Shown here: positions 7,911 through 41,998 of the stretch, in pieces
Position numbering within the stretch: position 1 is the stretch's first letter
Layout of the letters: every line of letters begins with the position of its first letter
Sequence record: PQ898602.1
DNA length: 64,000 bases
Strand: one strand, 5' to 3'
Translations under genes and position numbers: made by a program
The notes under the pieces: model-generated
Database searches by the model: none
Seen by the model: only the letters and a program-made list of their open reading frames with translations
Told to the model about the DNA's origin: nothing

Positions 7911-7984
7911 CGGGTCTTAGTTCAGTTTGGTAGAACGCTGCTTTTGGGAAGCAGAGGCCACAGGTTCAAATCCTGTAGACCCGA
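7911..7984 (+). tRNA. trnP: tRNA-Pro(UGG)
   Basis: CGGGTCT/AGACCCG acceptor, CTGCT-TTTGGGA-AGCAG arm. Confidence 0.95.
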
Positions 7985-7994
7985 TTTTAGATTT

Positions 7995-8002
7995 TATAAA
8001 TA
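7995..8002 (+). promoter_or_regulatory. T4-type late promoter
   Basis: TATAAATA 11 nt before ATG 8014. Confidence 0.65.
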
Positions 8003-8013
8003 ATCTTCAACCG

Positions 8014-8190
8014 ATGGAAGTATATTCAGTGGAATATTGGCAAGAGAATTGGGACGAATTGATGGAGAGAGTGGAGAACGGAGAGACAATAGGTATAGAA
8101 AATAAAGAGACTGGAGAGAGATGCGTAATGGTTCCTGCAGATGACGAACTTCTTCGCATTTACACCGAACAAAACAACGAAGCTTCTTGA
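8014..8190 (+). CDS. small protein, Phd/YefM antitoxin-like
   Basis: SVEYWQENWDELMERVENGETIGIE...CVMVP pattern resembles the Phd/YefM fold; ORF-track start lies inside the tRNA so corrected to 8014. Confidence 0.45.
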   Translation: MEVYSVEYWQENWDELMERVENGETIGIENKETGERCVMVPADDELLRIYTEQNNEAS

Positions 8191-8215
8191 CGGATCACCC
8201 TCAACCCCTTATAAT
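8187..8215 (+). promoter_or_regulatory. sigma70-like early promoter
   Basis: TTGACG-N17-TATAAT. Confidence 0.75.
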
Positions 8216-8238: not shown

Positions 8239-8454
8239 ATGACAATCGCAACTAAGTTCAAGAAAGACATTCAAACACTCCGCGCCGCCGCGGAAGGTGA
8301 TATTTTCCTTGATGTAAAGAATCCGAAACTTTTCAAAAAGGTACGCCGTTATTATGAAAACAATGGTGTAGTCTTCTCTGGTGATCCACTTGACGATTAT
8401 GAAATCATGATGGAACACATTTATAATGATCTTGAATCTGTGGAGGTGTCGTGA
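8239..8454 (+). CDS. hypothetical protein
   Basis: 71 aa ORF, SD-like AGGA; cyanophage-like. Confidence 0.65.
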   Translation: MTIATKFKKDIQTLRAAAEGDIFLDVKNPKLFKKVRRYYENNGVVFSGDPLDDYEIMMEHIYNDLESVEVS

Positions 8455-8690
8455 AAATTCTCCTAGAGCGTTTTCCGTATCGTTACGTGGAATGTGGAAC
8501 CCTAGAAAATGGGTTCCCTGACTATCGTATTCAAAAAGCCCATCATTATACTAAGAGGTACACTGACATGTATCTCCTTGATAATCAGATGCAACTTTTG
8601 ACTGCGATTGATGATTTCGAGTACACCAAATGGTTAGATCCTGAAGGTGTACCTTGTTACATCAAAGACTCGGTATCGTCTAGAAACTAG
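8451..8690 (+). CDS. hypothetical protein
   Basis: GTG start overlapping the upstream stop; 79 aa. Confidence 0.65.
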   Translation: MKILLERFPYRYVECGTLENGFPDYRIQKAHHYTKRYTDMYLLDNQMQLLTAIDDFEYTKWLDPEGVPCYIKDSVSSRN

Positions 8691-8736
8691 CCCTGGTCGG
8701 GATCCCCCCTTTCCCCTTTCTTTGGTTTACTAAATA
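8678..8736 (+). repeat. regulatory module A (CTAG-AAA-CTAG-CCCTGGT... followed by late promoter CTAAATA)
   Basis: AAACTAGCCCTGGT resembles AAACTTACCCTGGT at 10521; CTAAATA at 8730-8736. Confidence 0.45.
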
Positions 8737-8768
8737 ACTGAAGATAAAGAAGTTATCATTGTAATAAC

Positions 8769-9308
8769 ATGGCGGCAGTCTTAACTAACTCTGGTATTCA
8801 GTTTAGTGATAACACAACTTTGAACTCTAAGTATGGTATCATACCTCAAGGTTCTCAGATGTTGTTTCGTCAAAGTTCAGCCCCAAGTGGTTGGACTAAA
8901 CAAACTAGTAGTACCTATAACAATTCAGGCTGTAGAATTGTTACTGGTAATGTGGGTACTGGTGGAAACCAAGCTTTCACCAGTTCTTTTGCTCAAAGAA
9001 ACATTCAGAGTGGAGTTAGTGTTTCGGTAAACGGCGGTAACGTTCAAAACCATACACTAAGTACACCTCAAATTCCCTCCCACAACCACCCATACCAAAG
9101 ACCTAATGCGTCTAGAGGTTATCACGGCGCTACACCAAATAGTAGTGTTCCTGCCATCTATACTACTAATGGACAGAATACTGGTAACAGAGGTAGTAAT
9201 GCCCAGCACTCTCATGGTCGTAATGGATTTTCCTCTAGTGGTAACCTAGCTACCTCTATGGACTTGAGAGTAAAGTATACAGACGTTATTATCTGTAGTT
9301 TCAACTAA
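8769..9308 (+). CDS. tail-collar/short-fibre-like virion protein
   Basis: APSGWTK, HTLSTPQIPSHNH and HSH trimeric-fibre motifs. Confidence 0.6.
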   Translation: MAAVLTNSGIQFSDNTTLNSKYGIIPQGSQMLFRQSSAPSGWTKQTSSTYNNSGCRIVTGNVGTGGNQAFTSSFAQRNIQSGVSVSVNGGNVQNHTLSTPQIPSHNHPYQRPNASRGYHGATPNSSVPAIYTTNGQNTGNRGSNAQHSHGRNGFSSSGNLATSMDLRVKYTDVIICSFN

Positions 9309-9358
9309 GTTTCCTAGTTCTTAAAACTAGGTGGTGGAGTCAAACGACCCTATAAATA
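9309..9358 (+). repeat. regulatory module B (GTTTC-hairpin-TGG plus late promoter TATAAATA)
   Basis: GTTTCCTAGTTCTTAAAACTAGGTGG similar to 10558-10587; TATAAATA at 9351-9358. Confidence 0.5.
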
Positions 9359-9384
9359 GAAAAAGAATAAGATAGATTTCAGTA

Positions 9385-9975
9385 ATGGCTCTCTTTCGTA
9401 TTAGACAACAGGGAATTGACTTCCAAGACGGAAGTCGAATGACATCTCTGTTCGATATTATTCCCAAAAATACTGGAATGCTGATTCATGCTTCAGCAGC
9501 TCCTACTGGATGGACAAAGAGAACTGATAATAGTTTTAACAATGCTGCACTGAGAATTGTCAGTCAGACTGCTTGGGTACCTAACACTCAAACAGGCAGA
9601 ACTGCATTTACTCAGGCTTTTAAGGAACACCAAAAATCACACACAATTACGAGTACAATTTCGGGATTATCGGTAGGTAACCATACCCTAACAACTCCTG
9701 AGATACCTAAGCATAATCATAATATACCTAATGCTGGTAGTGGTTCTGGTGTTGCTAATAACACTCCTAGTAATCAAGGTGGACAACGTGCTGATATGAG
9801 TGACGGCACATCAGGTAACAGAGGTAGTGATAGTGCTCATAAGCATCCTGTCAGTTATACATCAGTATCAGGTCCTCTTACTACAAATCATAATATCGCC
9901 GTTAGATACGTAGATGTTATTCTGTGTAAATATAGCGGATTTGAGTACAGCGGCAATGCTGATTCTGGATCTTGA
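9385..9975 (+). CDS. tail-collar/short-fibre-like virion protein (paralogue of 8769)
   Basis: APTGWTK, HTLTTPEIPKHNH, GNRGS..HKH, V.YVDVILC. Confidence 0.6.
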   Translation: MALFRIRQQGIDFQDGSRMTSLFDIIPKNTGMLIHASAAPTGWTKRTDNSFNNAALRIVSQTAWVPNTQTGRTAFTQAFKEHQKSHTITSTISGLSVGNHTLTTPEIPKHNHNIPNAGSGSGVANNTPSNQGGQRADMSDGTSGNRGSDSAHKHPVSYTSVSGPLTTNHNIAVRYVDVILCKYSGFEYSGNADSGS

Positions 9976-9999
9976 TCAATTTCTTTTTTTATTATGTGA

Positions 10000-10503
10000 G
10001 TGATGTCACAAGATCATATAATTGTTGTAAATAACTTTCTTCCAGAAACTAAGTTTAAAAGTTTTCAAAAGTATTTTTTTGATACTTACACTGAAGAAAA
10101 TTGTTGTATCCACTATTATTCTGTAGGTGAAACGCATAGTCGTAGTGACATGTGTTTGCATTTATTAAATTATGCCTCAAATTATTTTGATCTATCCAAA
10201 TGTGTTGGATATGAATTGTGGTGTCAACACAATACCAAACCAGAATCAAAAGGTCCAAATGGTGGATGGCATTTTGACAAGGATGAGGTTCTTGAAGAAC
10301 AAACAGGAGAATTAAAATTTCCTCTGTGTTCAATAATCTATTACGTAAATGTTCAGTATCTAACTGGTGGATGTCTTTATGTTGAAGACATGAAGATTCC
10401 TCCTCAAAACAATCGACTTGTATTGATTCCTCCTGGAAAAGAACATTGTGTTGAAGAGTTTGGAGGGAAAAGAACATCTATGATAATCAATCCCTGGAAT
10501 TAG
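10000..10503 (+). CDS. 2OG-Fe(II) oxygenase
   Basis: WHFDKDE, GGCL, PPGKEHCV...R. Confidence 0.8.
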   Translation: MMSQDHIIVVNNFLPETKFKSFQKYFFDTYTEENCCIHYYSVGETHSRSDMCLHLLNYASNYFDLSKCVGYELWCQHNTKPESKGPNGGWHFDKDEVLEEQTGELKFPLCSIIYYVNVQYLTGGCLYVEDMKIPPQNNRLVLIPPGKEHCVEEFGGKRTSMIINPWN

Positions 10504-10600
10504 AGTCCTGGAATGACGATAAACTTACCCTGGTGCGGATGGGATAACTCCCGCCAGGTTTCTTGTTTCCTGTAAAAGAACAAGTGGCGTGCATGTAAAG
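10504..10600 (+). ncRNA. structured RNA, probably wcaG RNA motif (module C)
   Basis: GGTGCGGATGGG-ATAA-CTCCCGCC hairpin then CTTGTT/AACAAG hairpin and TGGCGTGCATG; lies upstream of the sugar-epimerase operon as expected for cyanophage wcaG RNAs; family name from memory. Confidence 0.6.
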
Positions 10601-10609
10601 ACCTAAATA

Positions 10610-10634
10610 AGAGAGTCACAGGACTCTCTTTTTT
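10610..10634 (+). terminator. intrinsic terminator-like hairpin
   Basis: GAGAGTC-ACAG-GACTCTC followed by T6; CTAAATA late promoter at 10603-10609. Confidence 0.65.
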
Positions 10635-10640
10635 AATGCG

Positions 10641-12233
10641 ATGAGGATACTAGCAATTCATGCAGGTCACGATTCAAATGCCTGTGTTTATGAAGAAGGT
10701 AAATTGGAAAAATATTTACTAACAGAGAGAGTTACTGGTAAGAAACACGATAGAGATATCTACTCACTATTACCTGAATTCCTATCTAGTCAAAAAGAAG
10801 AAGCAGATCGTATTTTGATTAGTGGAGAAAAAAGACTTCTAGATCTTATTGCAGAACATTATCCATTTGAAGTAGGTGGTCCAGGCCTACGTCAGACTAG
10901 AGGAGGTACGGTTGTTTTGTCTGTCGAAGGGCATCATCAACATCATGCCGATCTTGCATTTTGGAATAGTGGTTTTGATAAAAGTATTGTATTAGTTGTA
11001 GACTCTCAAGGTCATCATGTAAATAAACAAAAGAATGATCTTGTAGAATCTGAAAGCATTTATGTTTATGATAGGTTGAAAAAACCTTCGAGATTATATA
11101 AAAGTGTTATTAGATGTGTCCCCGAAGAAGGCGTAGATAGTGGTAGAAAATTTGAAAGAATTCAAACACAATATTCTCATAAGAATAATTTTGGTTTAGG
11201 ATCTTTTTATGATATTGCTGCAAAATATATTGGTGGAACTAACGATGATTGTGGTAAAGCGATGGCACTCGCTGCTTATGGTGAACCAACTCCAAAGTAT
11301 AAGTTCTTTTTGAAAGGTAATAGTTTCAATAATGAAGGTGCATTTGAACACTATGATGGTGACATTGCGAAGGGAATAACTAATGCGAATCATAAGAAGT
11401 ATGCGGATTTCTGCTACGAGACGCAGAGACAAACAGAAAAGGCATTGGGCGATCTTGTTGCGAGTTCAGTGGCCTCAACAGGTATAAAAAAAGTTTGTGT
11501 ATCTGGTGGATATGCAATGAATGTTGTTGCTAATTATTATCTAACTCAGAGATTTCCTGATGTTGATTTTTACTTTGAACCCATGTGTGGTGATAGTGGA
11601 CTATCAATTGGGTATGCAATGAGTCATTATGCTATGAAGGGTGGAGTTCCAGAACCATTAGGAACTACATTTTTACATGGAGAGGTTTATGAAAACAACC
11701 ATGTGGGTGAGGAGAAGAGTCTAAAGGACATTGCAAAACTCCTTTATGGTGATAAGTCTGTTGCAGTCTATAAGGGTCTTGCAGAAGCAGGTCAACGTGC
11801 TTTGGGTAATAGATCAATTCTGTTCAATCCATTGAATAGAAAGGCAAAAGAAATTGTTAATAAGATCAAAAAGAGAGAATGGTATAGACCTTTTGCTGCA
11901 GTTGTATTGGAAGAGGATGCTCATCTTTTCTTTGACAATGTGATTGCCAATGAATACATGACCATGTGTTTCCCAGTTAATAAAGGTCTAGGTCTTATGA
12001 TTCCTGGGGTTACTCATGTAGATAAAACATGCAGAGTTCAGACTGTTTCTAGTGGTTATCTTTATGAACTTCTAAAAGAGTTTAAAGAATTATCTGGGTA
12101 TGGTATTTTACTGAACACCAGTCTAAATCTCGCAGGTGATCCTCTGGTAGAGACTCCCGAACAAGCAGTGTCCCTTCTCAAAAACTCTAGTCTAGATCAC
12201 CTTTGGTTCGCAGATACTGGTCAAATGCTCTGA
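10641..12233 (+). CDS. carbamoyltransferase (NodU/CmcH family)
   Basis: GHDS, HHQHHA, SGGYAMN, RALGNRSIL, KKREWYRPFA, NTSLN. Confidence 0.9.
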   Translation: MRILAIHAGHDSNACVYEEGKLEKYLLTERVTGKKHDRDIYSLLPEFLSSQKEEADRILISGEKRLLDLIAEHYPFEVGGPGLRQTRGGTVVLSVEGHHQHHADLAFWNSGFDKSIVLVVDSQGHHVNKQKNDLVESESIYVYDRLKKPSRLYKSVIRCVPEEGVDSGRKFERIQTQYSHKNNFGLGSFYDIAAKYIGGTNDDCGKAMALAAYGEPTPKYKFFLKGNSFNNEGAFEHYDGDIAKGITNANHKKYADFCYETQRQTEKALGDLVASSVASTGIKKVCVSGGYAMNVVANYYLTQRFPDVDFYFEPMCGDSGLSIGYAMSHYAMKGGVPEPLGTTFLHGEVYENNHVGEEKSLKDIAKLLYGDKSVAVYKGLAEAGQRALGNRSILFNPLNRKAKEIVNKIKKREWYRPFAAVVLEEDAHLFFDNVIANEYMTMCFPVNKGLGLMIPGVTHVDKTCRVQTVSSGYLYELLKEFKELSGYGILLNTSLNLAGDPLVETPEQAVSLLKNSSLDHLWFADTGQML

Positions 12234-36887: not shown

Positions 36888-36917
36888 CATTATACGGAAA
36901 TCCGTATATTATAAATA
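36884..36917 (+). promoter_or_regulatory. overlapping early and late promoters of psbA
   Basis: TTGACA-N17-TATTAT with TATAAATA at 36910-36917. Confidence 0.7.
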
Positions 36918-36959
36918 AATCAACGGATTAAGAAACGTAACGTTTTCTAATCTATTGTA

Positions 36960-37075
36960 AACTCTCCGTAAACCGAGACCTCTAGGGAGTATAAATCACG
37001 TCTCTAATACCCGAGCCGGAGGGTGGCACGGGAATACTTATAACTGGTTCGTCCCCCGAACTTTTACTTAACCCT
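36960..37075 (+). ncRNA. psbA 5' leader RNA, probably PhotoRC-II motif
   Basis: GAGAC...GTCTC and CCCG..CGGG pairings in the psbA 5' UTR; family assignment from recall and position. Confidence 0.55.
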
Positions 37076-41925: not shown

Positions 41926-41998
41926 GGGGGATTAGCTCAATTGGTAGAGCACCTGCTTTGCAAGCAGGGGGTTAGCGGTTCGAGTCCGCTATTCTCCA
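41926..41998 (+). tRNA. trnA: tRNA-Ala(UGC)
   Basis: GGGGGAT/ATTCTCC acceptor with G3:U70, CCTGC-TTTGCAA-GCAGG arm. Confidence 0.95.

Follow-up and report, generated by a model that had tools for sequence, protein, structure and literature searches.

Introduction

The wcaG RNA was described by Weinberg et al. (2010, PMC2864571) as a cyanophage and marine riboswitch candidate located upstream of exopolysaccharide or high-light genes, and the same authors noted a duplicated UGGYG within it as a possible protein-binding site, as well as hits without P1, P2 or P3. The work presented here concerns a wcaG locus in the 244-kb genome of Synechococcus phage S-SCSM2R (PQ898602.1), of which a stretch of 64,000 nucleotides (nt), called the window below, was analysed; the region matches the record at 100% identity, and window position 8400 corresponds to record position 188586. 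An earlier reading of this stretch from its letters alone (the sequence-only reading) had drawn attention to three intergenic modules with shared pieces and had supposed that they were parts of one ancestral structured-RNA array split by inserted genes. Comparison with relatives identified the three modules as pieces of one RNA array, in keeping with that supposition.

The second described system of relevance is the promoter early stem-loop (PeSL) of T4-type phages, which consists of a sigma-70 early promoter and a terminator-like stem-loop and is present in many dispersed copies (Arbiol et al. 2010, PMC2839356; Comeau et al. 2014, PMC4122927). No report of PeSLs in a cyanophage was found in the literature, and one paper judged them unlikely in S-PM2. 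The late-promoter consensus is NATAAATA in cyanophages and T4-like phages and CTAAATA in Aeh1 (PMC2984593, PMC1524935), and such a motif is expected some 6 nt before the transcription start of a late gene. The sequence-only reading had likened the locus to the PeSL system, had placed a late promoter at the end of each module and had proposed that the RNA units might double as recombination points.

Results

The window contains four RNA units in three modules, all on the + strand. Module 3, at 10501–10598, is a canonical wcaG RNA comprising units 3 and 4. It scored 82.5 bits against the Rfam wcaG model (RF01761; gathering score 42) and is already annotated in PQ898602.1 as ncRNA wcaG. The presence of wcaG, suggested from the letters alone, was thereby confirmed by cmscan, and the parallel suggestion of manA was not borne out, the Rfam scan giving no manA match in the window. 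The 5′ part of module 3 consists of a hairpin GUC/GAC at 10505–10517, a linker, CCCUGGUG and the P2 element CGGAUGGG..CCCGCC at 10536–10555, and the 3′ part of a GUUUC-hairpin-GUGG at 10558–10587 followed by the tail GUGGCGUGCAUG, a variant also seen in relatives. The wcaG hallmarks, three hairpins together with UGGUGCGGAUGGG, CCCGCCUGGUUUC and GUGGCGAGCCUG, are present in 10528–10595. The P1 of module 3 is not the P1 of the model but a hairpin of the type called a below, and cmscan marks three non-standard pairs there.

Module 1 (unit 1 or M, 8666–8709) begins with a hairpin AGAC/GUCU at 8666–8681, which overlaps the end of the phrog_481 open reading frame (ORF), and continues with a linker AGAAACUAG, CCCUGGUC at 8691–8698 and a small GC element GGGAUCCCCCC at 8699–8709. 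It gave 49.1 bits with R2, a covariance model of the first unit type trained on other phages and S-SCSM2R, and the same element occupies the orthologous site in S-SCSM1. Module 2 (unit 2 or X, 9309–9350) gave 62.9 bits with the model R1 and is composed of GUUUC, a hairpin CCUAGUU/AACUAGG at 9313–9331, UGGUG and a small hairpin GAGUCAAACGACCC at 9337–9350. Both units are supported by covariation, as described below. Module 1 had no match to the Rfam wcaG model and module 2 had a weak partial match of 23.3 bits at 9271–9345, which is below threshold and without the central hairpin; neither reaches wcaG membership by itself. The two modules lie 600 nt apart in the window, so they cannot be scored as one wcaG copy. 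Comparison with the arrays of other phages suggests that they are the two halves of a second, divergent wcaG-like copy.

All of the motifs picked out by the sequence-only reading were present where it had placed them and were judged non-random from pattern counts and independent models. The 14-mer repeat (AAACTAGCCCTGGT at 8684–8697 and AAACTTACCCTGGT at 10521–10534) has these two matches only in the window and is weakly significant, with 0.26 matches expected and two of 100 shuffles reaching two. R2 also matched 10504–10534 (26 bits, E 1e-8), a stretch outside its training set, which shows that this first repeat is a shared hairpin-plus-linker. The second repeat, GTTTC-hairpin-TGG, was found at 9309–9334 and 10558–10587; the loose pattern GTTTC..GTGG is near expectation (nine found, 5.2 expected). 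The more specific pattern GTGGTGGAGTCA-N-GACCC was taken from S-B43 and S-SCSM1; its single match in the window is module 2, and at least 120 viral contigs contain it. In the whole 244-kb genome R1 and R2 matched only at 8655–8718, 9297–9355 and 10504–10534 (window numbering). The units of S-SCSM2R are thus a local hotspot and not a dispersed repeat family, and a genome-wide system of the PeSL kind, as implied by the sequence-only reading, was not supported.

In cultured relatives the elements lie directly next to one another. S-B43 and S-B05 carry an element starting CACTGGTCGG, then a near-identical module-2 element (GTTTC-hairpin-GTGGTGGAGTCA..GACCC) and then canonical wcaG with its terminator, all arranged head to tail. 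In S-SCSM1, AAACTAGCCCTGGTCGG follows the same small ORF as in the window and runs straight into the carbamoyltransferase gene. The survey was extended by scanning the metagenomic contigs of IMG/VR with two exact patterns, the wcaG central hairpin (P tail) and the module-2 (X) tail. Each scan gave at least 120 contigs; 182 dereplicated loci were examined, and the counts of unit types and arrangements given below refer to the loci listed. Pattern matches in the GC-rich contigs L138, L154, L163 and L168 were regarded as chance matches in coding DNA and ignored.

Each unit in these loci starts with a hairpin, which is followed by UGGY(G/C), and closes with a small GC-rich hairpin or a tail. Four tails were distinguished: M (CCCUGGUC-GGGAG..CCCC), X (UGGUG-GAGUCA..GACCC), P (UGGUG-CGGAUGGG..CCCGCC) and T (GUGGCG(A/U)GC(C/A)UG). 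The hairpin ahead of the tail is either of type a, AGUCnCGGnnnGACU followed by an A-rich linker, or of type b, in which GUUUC precedes stem, loop and stem. The hairpin preceding M is nearly always of type a and that preceding T always of type b, while X and P take either type; only six P units have type a, among them the one in wcaG of the window. The units appear in the order M, X, P, T with few exceptions and contiguous forms dominate, with 39 loci of X-P-T, 12 of M-X-P-T, 11 of X-T and 10 of M-P-T. With relaxed detection X was found after an ORF end in 82 cases and after M in 44, and P after an ORF end in 31, after M in 28 and after X in 81. T follows P directly in all 109 loci that have both, the two never being separated. 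A minimal form, consisting of a lone X-type unit directly before an intrinsic terminator and without P or T, was observed in L183, L167, L160, L198 and L187. The T tail itself exists in two versions, GUGGCGAGCCUG and GUGGCGUGCAUG (columns 222–233 of an alignment of 24 arrays; 10584–10595 in the window), in which two positions change together, A..C in one and U..A in the other, and in the second version a conserved (U)AAAGACCU comes next.

The Rfam wcaG family corresponds to a P unit plus a T unit. In L147 the wcaG model matched the M+X pair (45.9 bits) as well as the P+T pair (67.6 bits), both above the gathering score, and from this the four-unit array is interpreted as two tandem wcaG-like copies. 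Among the sequences of the wcaG seed alignment there is also one of the M+X type whose flank contains a P+T copy. The upstream copy usually goes undetected: in 15 of the 16 contiguous arrays tested the downstream copy alone passes the Rfam threshold, and the M and X units of L096 are covered by no Rfam family.

The hairpins were tested for covariation unit by unit, as RNAalifold gave a poorly resolved result when 24 whole arrays were aligned with MAFFT, the two hairpin types being unequal in length and alternating at one position. In the X hairpin 99.8% of the cells were paired across 67 sequences, with compensatory changes in four of seven pairs (69 cells), a level reached by none of 500 shuffles. 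The M hairpin was 89.8% paired with 29 compensatory cells, the shortfall being caused by a one-column misregistration of some rows. Both hairpins contain G-U pairs, indicating that pairing takes place at the RNA rather than the DNA level. The structural support for the units comes from covariation only.

The alignment check proposed by the sequence-only reading gave the expected picture, with units contiguous in many cyanomyoviruses and variable genes between them in others. In about 45 of the 182 loci more than 110 nt, holding one or more genes, separate the units, and the intervening DNA encodes at least 13 gene families, several of which appear in more than one unit context. They include a 77-amino-acid (aa) membrane protein (phrog_2318) whose gene lies between M and X in every case, a 66-aa protein with an ACACACA leader, encoded after X or M and before P, and a coiled-coil protein (phrog_35121), encoded after X and before P or T and preceded by CTAAATA right after GACCC in 11 of 11 cases. 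A cupin-type mannose-6-phosphate isomerase, a 2-oxoglutarate (2OG) oxygenase, a methyltransferase-like protein and others are also located between units. The hairpin of a unit overlaps or abuts the upstream stop codon and the tail goes with the following sequence, which places the cassette junction at the UGG. The wcaG units can accordingly be described, from their sequence context, as separable modules that appear to mark the borders of swappable genes. One family from between units, fam1 (64–70 aa), always has a ACACACAnACACACA leader ahead of its GGAG and ATG (L013, L027, L038, L039, L052, L067, L073, L081, L090, L179 and L206), which may be a CA-rich translational enhancer or binding site.

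Indels between contigs that are at least 90% identical fall exactly at unit borders. L013 and L086 share 90–93% identity on both sides of a 248-nt cassette insertion, which sits precisely at the join of the X tail and the following GUUUC hairpin. Presence or absence of the phrog_481 gene distinguishes the members of four more contig pairs, the breakpoint adjoining the M hairpin on its 5′ side. L079 and L103 share 99.7% identity across the array and are set apart by a 1055-nt epimerase gene that lies between two copies of a -10 box. The history of the M–X junction was followed on a tree of the 270 nt upstream of M in 62 loci. On this tree the state with a gene after M requires at least 10 changes, compared to 15–23 for shuffled labels. 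The window, its near-twin L098 and S-SCSM1 nest in a clade with 95–96% support, in which M and X are contiguous in 10–11 of 14 members. Since the window nests among contiguous relatives and the family of genes A and B, which interrupt the array in the window, is found elsewhere in S-SCSM1, the more parsimonious and likelier course for the S-SCSM2R lineage is that late structural genes were inserted into an array that had been contiguous.

Three late-promoter-like motifs accompany the modules on the + strand, each 34–39 nt ahead of an ATG. CTAAATA at 8730–8736 lies 39 nt before gene A and TATAAATA at 9351–9358 lies 34 nt before gene B, and both are conserved in L098. Across the 64 kb there are 11 sites with CTAAATA or TATAAATA on the + strand and none on the - strand, and seven of the 11 are intergenic although 88% of the window is coding. 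Motifs 8730 and 9351 are credible candidates for late promoters of the inserted virion-type genes. The third motif, CTAAATA at 10603–10609, is situated between the wcaG tail and the terminator and is doubtful as a promoter, its position reading CTTATAA or CTTACAA in relatives with the same tail variant. Speculatively, if this motif fires, transcription would start at about 10615 in the 5′ arm of the terminator hairpin and the transcripts would escape termination. The notion of a late promoter in every module is thus credible for the first two and doubtful for the third. Nor do the candidate promoters appear to be part of the RNA units; they belong to the inserted genes A and B and, in relatives, to the fam2 cassette, and other cassettes between units are without a motif of the CTAAATA/TATAAATA type.

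An intrinsic-terminator-like hairpin with a U run is located at 10609–10634 on the + strand (folding z -5.87), with no -10 box after it. Of 132 relatives, 116 have a terminator downstream of the last unit (T tail), at a median distance of 32 nt, and in 78 of the 116 terminator-bearing loci a TATAAT-like -10 hexamer follows the U run. TTGACA or TTTACA was found 17 nt upstream of the -10 box in 34 of the 132 relatives, compared to 10.5 expected, starting at a median of 17 nt past the T tail and hence within the region of the terminator hairpin. Composite terminator/early promoter arrangements of this kind downstream of the T tail can be seen in, for example, L145, L014, L019 and L062 and are similar to the PeSLs of T4-like phages from enterobacteria. 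Since a promoter lies beyond the terminator, the array looks like the 3′ end of the transcription unit before it and not like a leader of the sugar genes. At the other end a sigma-70-type promoter-like site (TTGACG, 17 nt, TATAAT; 11 of 12 matches) is present at 8187–8215 on the + strand and is likely to be the start of an early transcript that would carry all of the units. Metatranscriptome contigs with apparent joints, such as 9343 to 10527, were considered as a sign of processing and rejected, being explained by other phages with contiguous units.

All genes around the modules (8239–12233) are on the + strand. Two small conserved ORFs, phrog_552 (8239–8454) and phrog_481 (8451–8690), precede unit 1, and the same ORFs usually come before the array in relatives. 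The phrog_481 ORF is annotated from 8568 only (40 aa), and the 79-aa form with a GTG start at 8451–8690 fits the whole family profile. Gene A (8769–9308, 179 aa) lies between units 1 and 2 and is followed, after unit 2, by gene B (9385–9975, 196 aa); the two are tail-fibre-like paralogues with 36% identity. Among cultured phages gene B has homologues in S-SCSM1 only, where SSCSM1_244 (L213:2492–3028) is annotated as a virion tail fibre protein and adjoins a short tail fibre gene at a locus other than the array, with GATAAATA 35 nt upstream. In S-SCSM2R the sole two copies of this family are both at the wcaG locus. A 2OG-Fe(II) oxygenase-like gene (10003–10503) has a stop codon that abuts the first wcaG hairpin, and its family was also found just before the P unit in L104. 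The sugar-modification cluster further downstream opens with a carbamoyltransferase (10641–12233; Pfam Carbam_trans_N and Carbam_trans_C, phrog_1601), and sugar epimerases come next.

The GenBank product names for SSCSM2R_231 to _235 (8568–12233) look shifted or mis-assigned, the oxygenase-like gene carrying the label 'baseplate protein' and the carbamoyltransferase the label '2OG-Fe(II) oxygenase'. The coding sequence 'VapB46 antitoxin' (7927–8190) overlaps a tRNA-Pro gene (7911–7984) on the same strand and is probably a spurious ORF call. By Rfam the tRNA genes of the window form a cluster of five at 342–884 and singles at 7911–7984 and 41926–41998. A PhotoRC-II RNA (RF01717, 71.4 bits) is located at 36949–37045 with a TATAAATA motif just upstream at 36910. 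In S-B43 a manA RNA (RF01745, 82.5 bits) was found at L008:1541–1751; it lies within a tRNA cluster, about 3 kb ahead of the wcaG array.

Discussion

The units are conserved, covarying and ordered, are separable by genes and bound recent indels. The explanation that best accommodates these properties, and that we consider highly probable as a whole, is that the three modules are parts of a four-unit wcaG-class array split by genes, the units acting independently and serving as homology arms. The upstream wcaG-like copy would have been bisected by the tail-fibre-like gene A, driven by its own late promoter, and gene B together with the 2OG oxygenase would separate this copy from canonical wcaG. 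On the early polycistronic transcript the units would act independently of one another, and such independence would allow them to tolerate separation. Most likely they would be repeated UGGYG-presenting sites for a protein or for RNA polymerase, just upstream of a terminator. Among the possible mechanisms we would rank such sites ahead of gene-owned 3′ stabilising or processing elements, with metabolite aptamers last. The conserved islands flanking each gene would at the same time be homology arms for cassette swaps between co-infecting phages, with the conserved 12–14-nt cores on either side of a cassette supplying the homology for exchange.

Several observations weigh against this explanation. 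The loci were chosen by their seed patterns and counted among the matches listed, so that locus frequencies are biased. Single-sequence folding of the three modules was no better than that of shuffles (z 0.33, -1.47 and -0.06), and the small GC hairpins of M and X, which either do not vary or align poorly, are without covariation support. The direction of change, insertion or gene loss, rests on a 270-nt marker and midpoint-free parsimony and assumes no recombination between flank and array; the microhomology at the junctions amounts to just a few bases. The metatranscriptome matches are contigs only, carrying no start, end or strand information. The units are confined to one locus, which leaves a dedicated recombination function conjectural. 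A role of the units as recombination points, as put forward in the sequence-only reading, is plausible on comparative grounds: the indels at unit borders and the variable genes between units support it, and the confinement to a single locus in S-SCSM2R weakens it.

The direction of events could also be reversed, each unit being the 3′ stabiliser or processing site of its own gene and the arrays, including canonical wcaG, being what gene loss has left behind. The unit hairpin does usually overlap or abut the upstream stop codon and travel with that gene, and a gene after M is the commoner state, in 36 of the 62 loci on the flank tree. The M tail GGGAGCAAACCCC moreover provides a Shine-Dalgarno-like GGAG 10 nt before the 77-aa fam0 start, and it persists where fam0 is lacking. 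However, the contiguity of M and X in most members of the window's own clade and the presence of the gene A/B family elsewhere in S-SCSM1 are at odds with gene loss, and the invariable adjacency of P and T fits a functional two-unit RNA and not debris, making this alternative less probable, if still one to be taken seriously. The classical view, in which the units are cis riboswitch aptamers that control the next gene from a 5′ untranslated region (UTR) and several units are tandem switches, agrees with the earlier classification of wcaG as a probable cis-regulatory riboswitch candidate and with its highly conserved junction nucleotides between covarying stems, and the M tail can sequester the GGAG ahead of fam0. 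Against this, CTAAATA or TATAAATA lies between the unit and the next gene for units 1 and 2 here and after X in 11 of 11 fam2 cassettes, and a terminator and then a -10 box come after the last unit; transcripts from these promoters would not contain the unit. Halves of the motif are conserved 600 nt apart, hence no single compact aptamer is formed, and in the sequences inspected no alternative pairing of the RNA with the variable terminator stems was conserved; one such pairing in L096, GGAUGGG/CCCAUCU, was rejected as it is not conserved in the other terminators inspected. Control of the next gene by tandem aptamers is accordingly improbable.

If the repeats instead acted as DNA, for instance as targets of a homing endonuclease or recombinase, the RNA structure would be incidental. 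Homing endonucleases do adjoin mobile cassettes in T4-like cyanophages, and the invariant 12–14-nt cores could be recognition sites. The compensatory changes and the G-U pairs, the latter leaving mismatches in the opposite strand if read as DNA, speak against it, as do the sense orientation of all units relative to the surrounding genes and the absence of any endonuclease gene among the cassettes seen, leaving action at the DNA level very improbable. That module 3 alone is real and modules 1 and 2 resemble wcaG by chance might be thought from the weak significance of the 14-mer and the near-expected frequency of the loose GTTTC..GTGG pattern, and is refuted by their match to covarying elements at the same relative position in dozens of phages; it is scarcely credible, and the similarity between the modules is beyond chance, as the sequence-only reading had assumed.

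In comparison with the wcaG described previously, module 3 has the same three hairpins and the same UGGUGCGGAUGGG, CCCGCC and GUGGCG tail, and shares the cyanophage host and the position before sugar-nucleotide genes. The published RNA is a single 98-nt element in a presumed 5′ UTR, whereas here one to four separable units are found, genes sit between units and even inside one copy, the upstream pair is usually below the Rfam threshold, and the array ends at a terminator, often with a -10 box, giving it a 3′ or intercistronic and not a leader-like appearance. As to novelty, wcaG and its duplicated UGGYG had been described before, and no description of four-unit or split multi-unit arrays, of genes between units or of the terminator/promoter that follows was found in the literature.

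The locus resembles PeSLs in that variable ORFs of a hyperplastic region have short conserved stem-loop motifs on either side, and these motifs delimit the indels and gene swaps by which related phages differ. In relatives the terminator downstream of the array is often accompanied by a -10 box, with a strict -35/-10 composite in the subset of 34 of 132, and the 1055-nt gene indel is flanked by two -10 copies. The locus differs in that units 1 and 2 lack both a U run and a -35/-10 pair, the neighbouring motifs being of late type and owned by the inserted genes. The wcaG units are also found at one locus, in contrast to a high density across the genome, and no recombination intermediates are known for wcaG-type units. 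HK022 put and the Bacillus EAR element ('epsC motif') are structured RNAs within a transcription unit, upstream of terminators or long sugar-gene clusters, and RNAs of this type can act at a distance from the terminator. Similar action at a distance would explain how units tolerate separation by genes, the analogy being purely functional: we know of no sequence or structure similarity of wcaG to put or EAR, and of no antitermination shown for wcaG.

A bolder proposal, which we regard as rather unlikely in its full form, is that wcaG-class units are position-independent cis modules that set read-through or RNA fate at a terminator/promoter and are also portable DNA homology arms, each unit presenting UGGYG at the foot of its hairpin to a multimeric protein or to the polymerase. 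If true, genes with their own promoters could be plugged in or out between units, and the modules would be the cyanophage counterpart of PeSL shuffling, built on a riboswitch-candidate RNA.

The wcaG RNA has been an unexplained riboswitch candidate since 2010. Its separable halves, its occurrence in up to four units and the terminal terminator with its usual -10 box argue against a compact 5′-leader aptamer and favour a series of autonomous binding sites, 3′ or intercistronic in position. The locus also offers a concrete and testable case of gene exchange among cyanophages, in which auxiliary and tail-fibre genes may be swapped at fixed 'sockets' within a hypervariable region for sugar modification, and this is relevant to the evolution of host range and surface modification in these abundant marine viruses.

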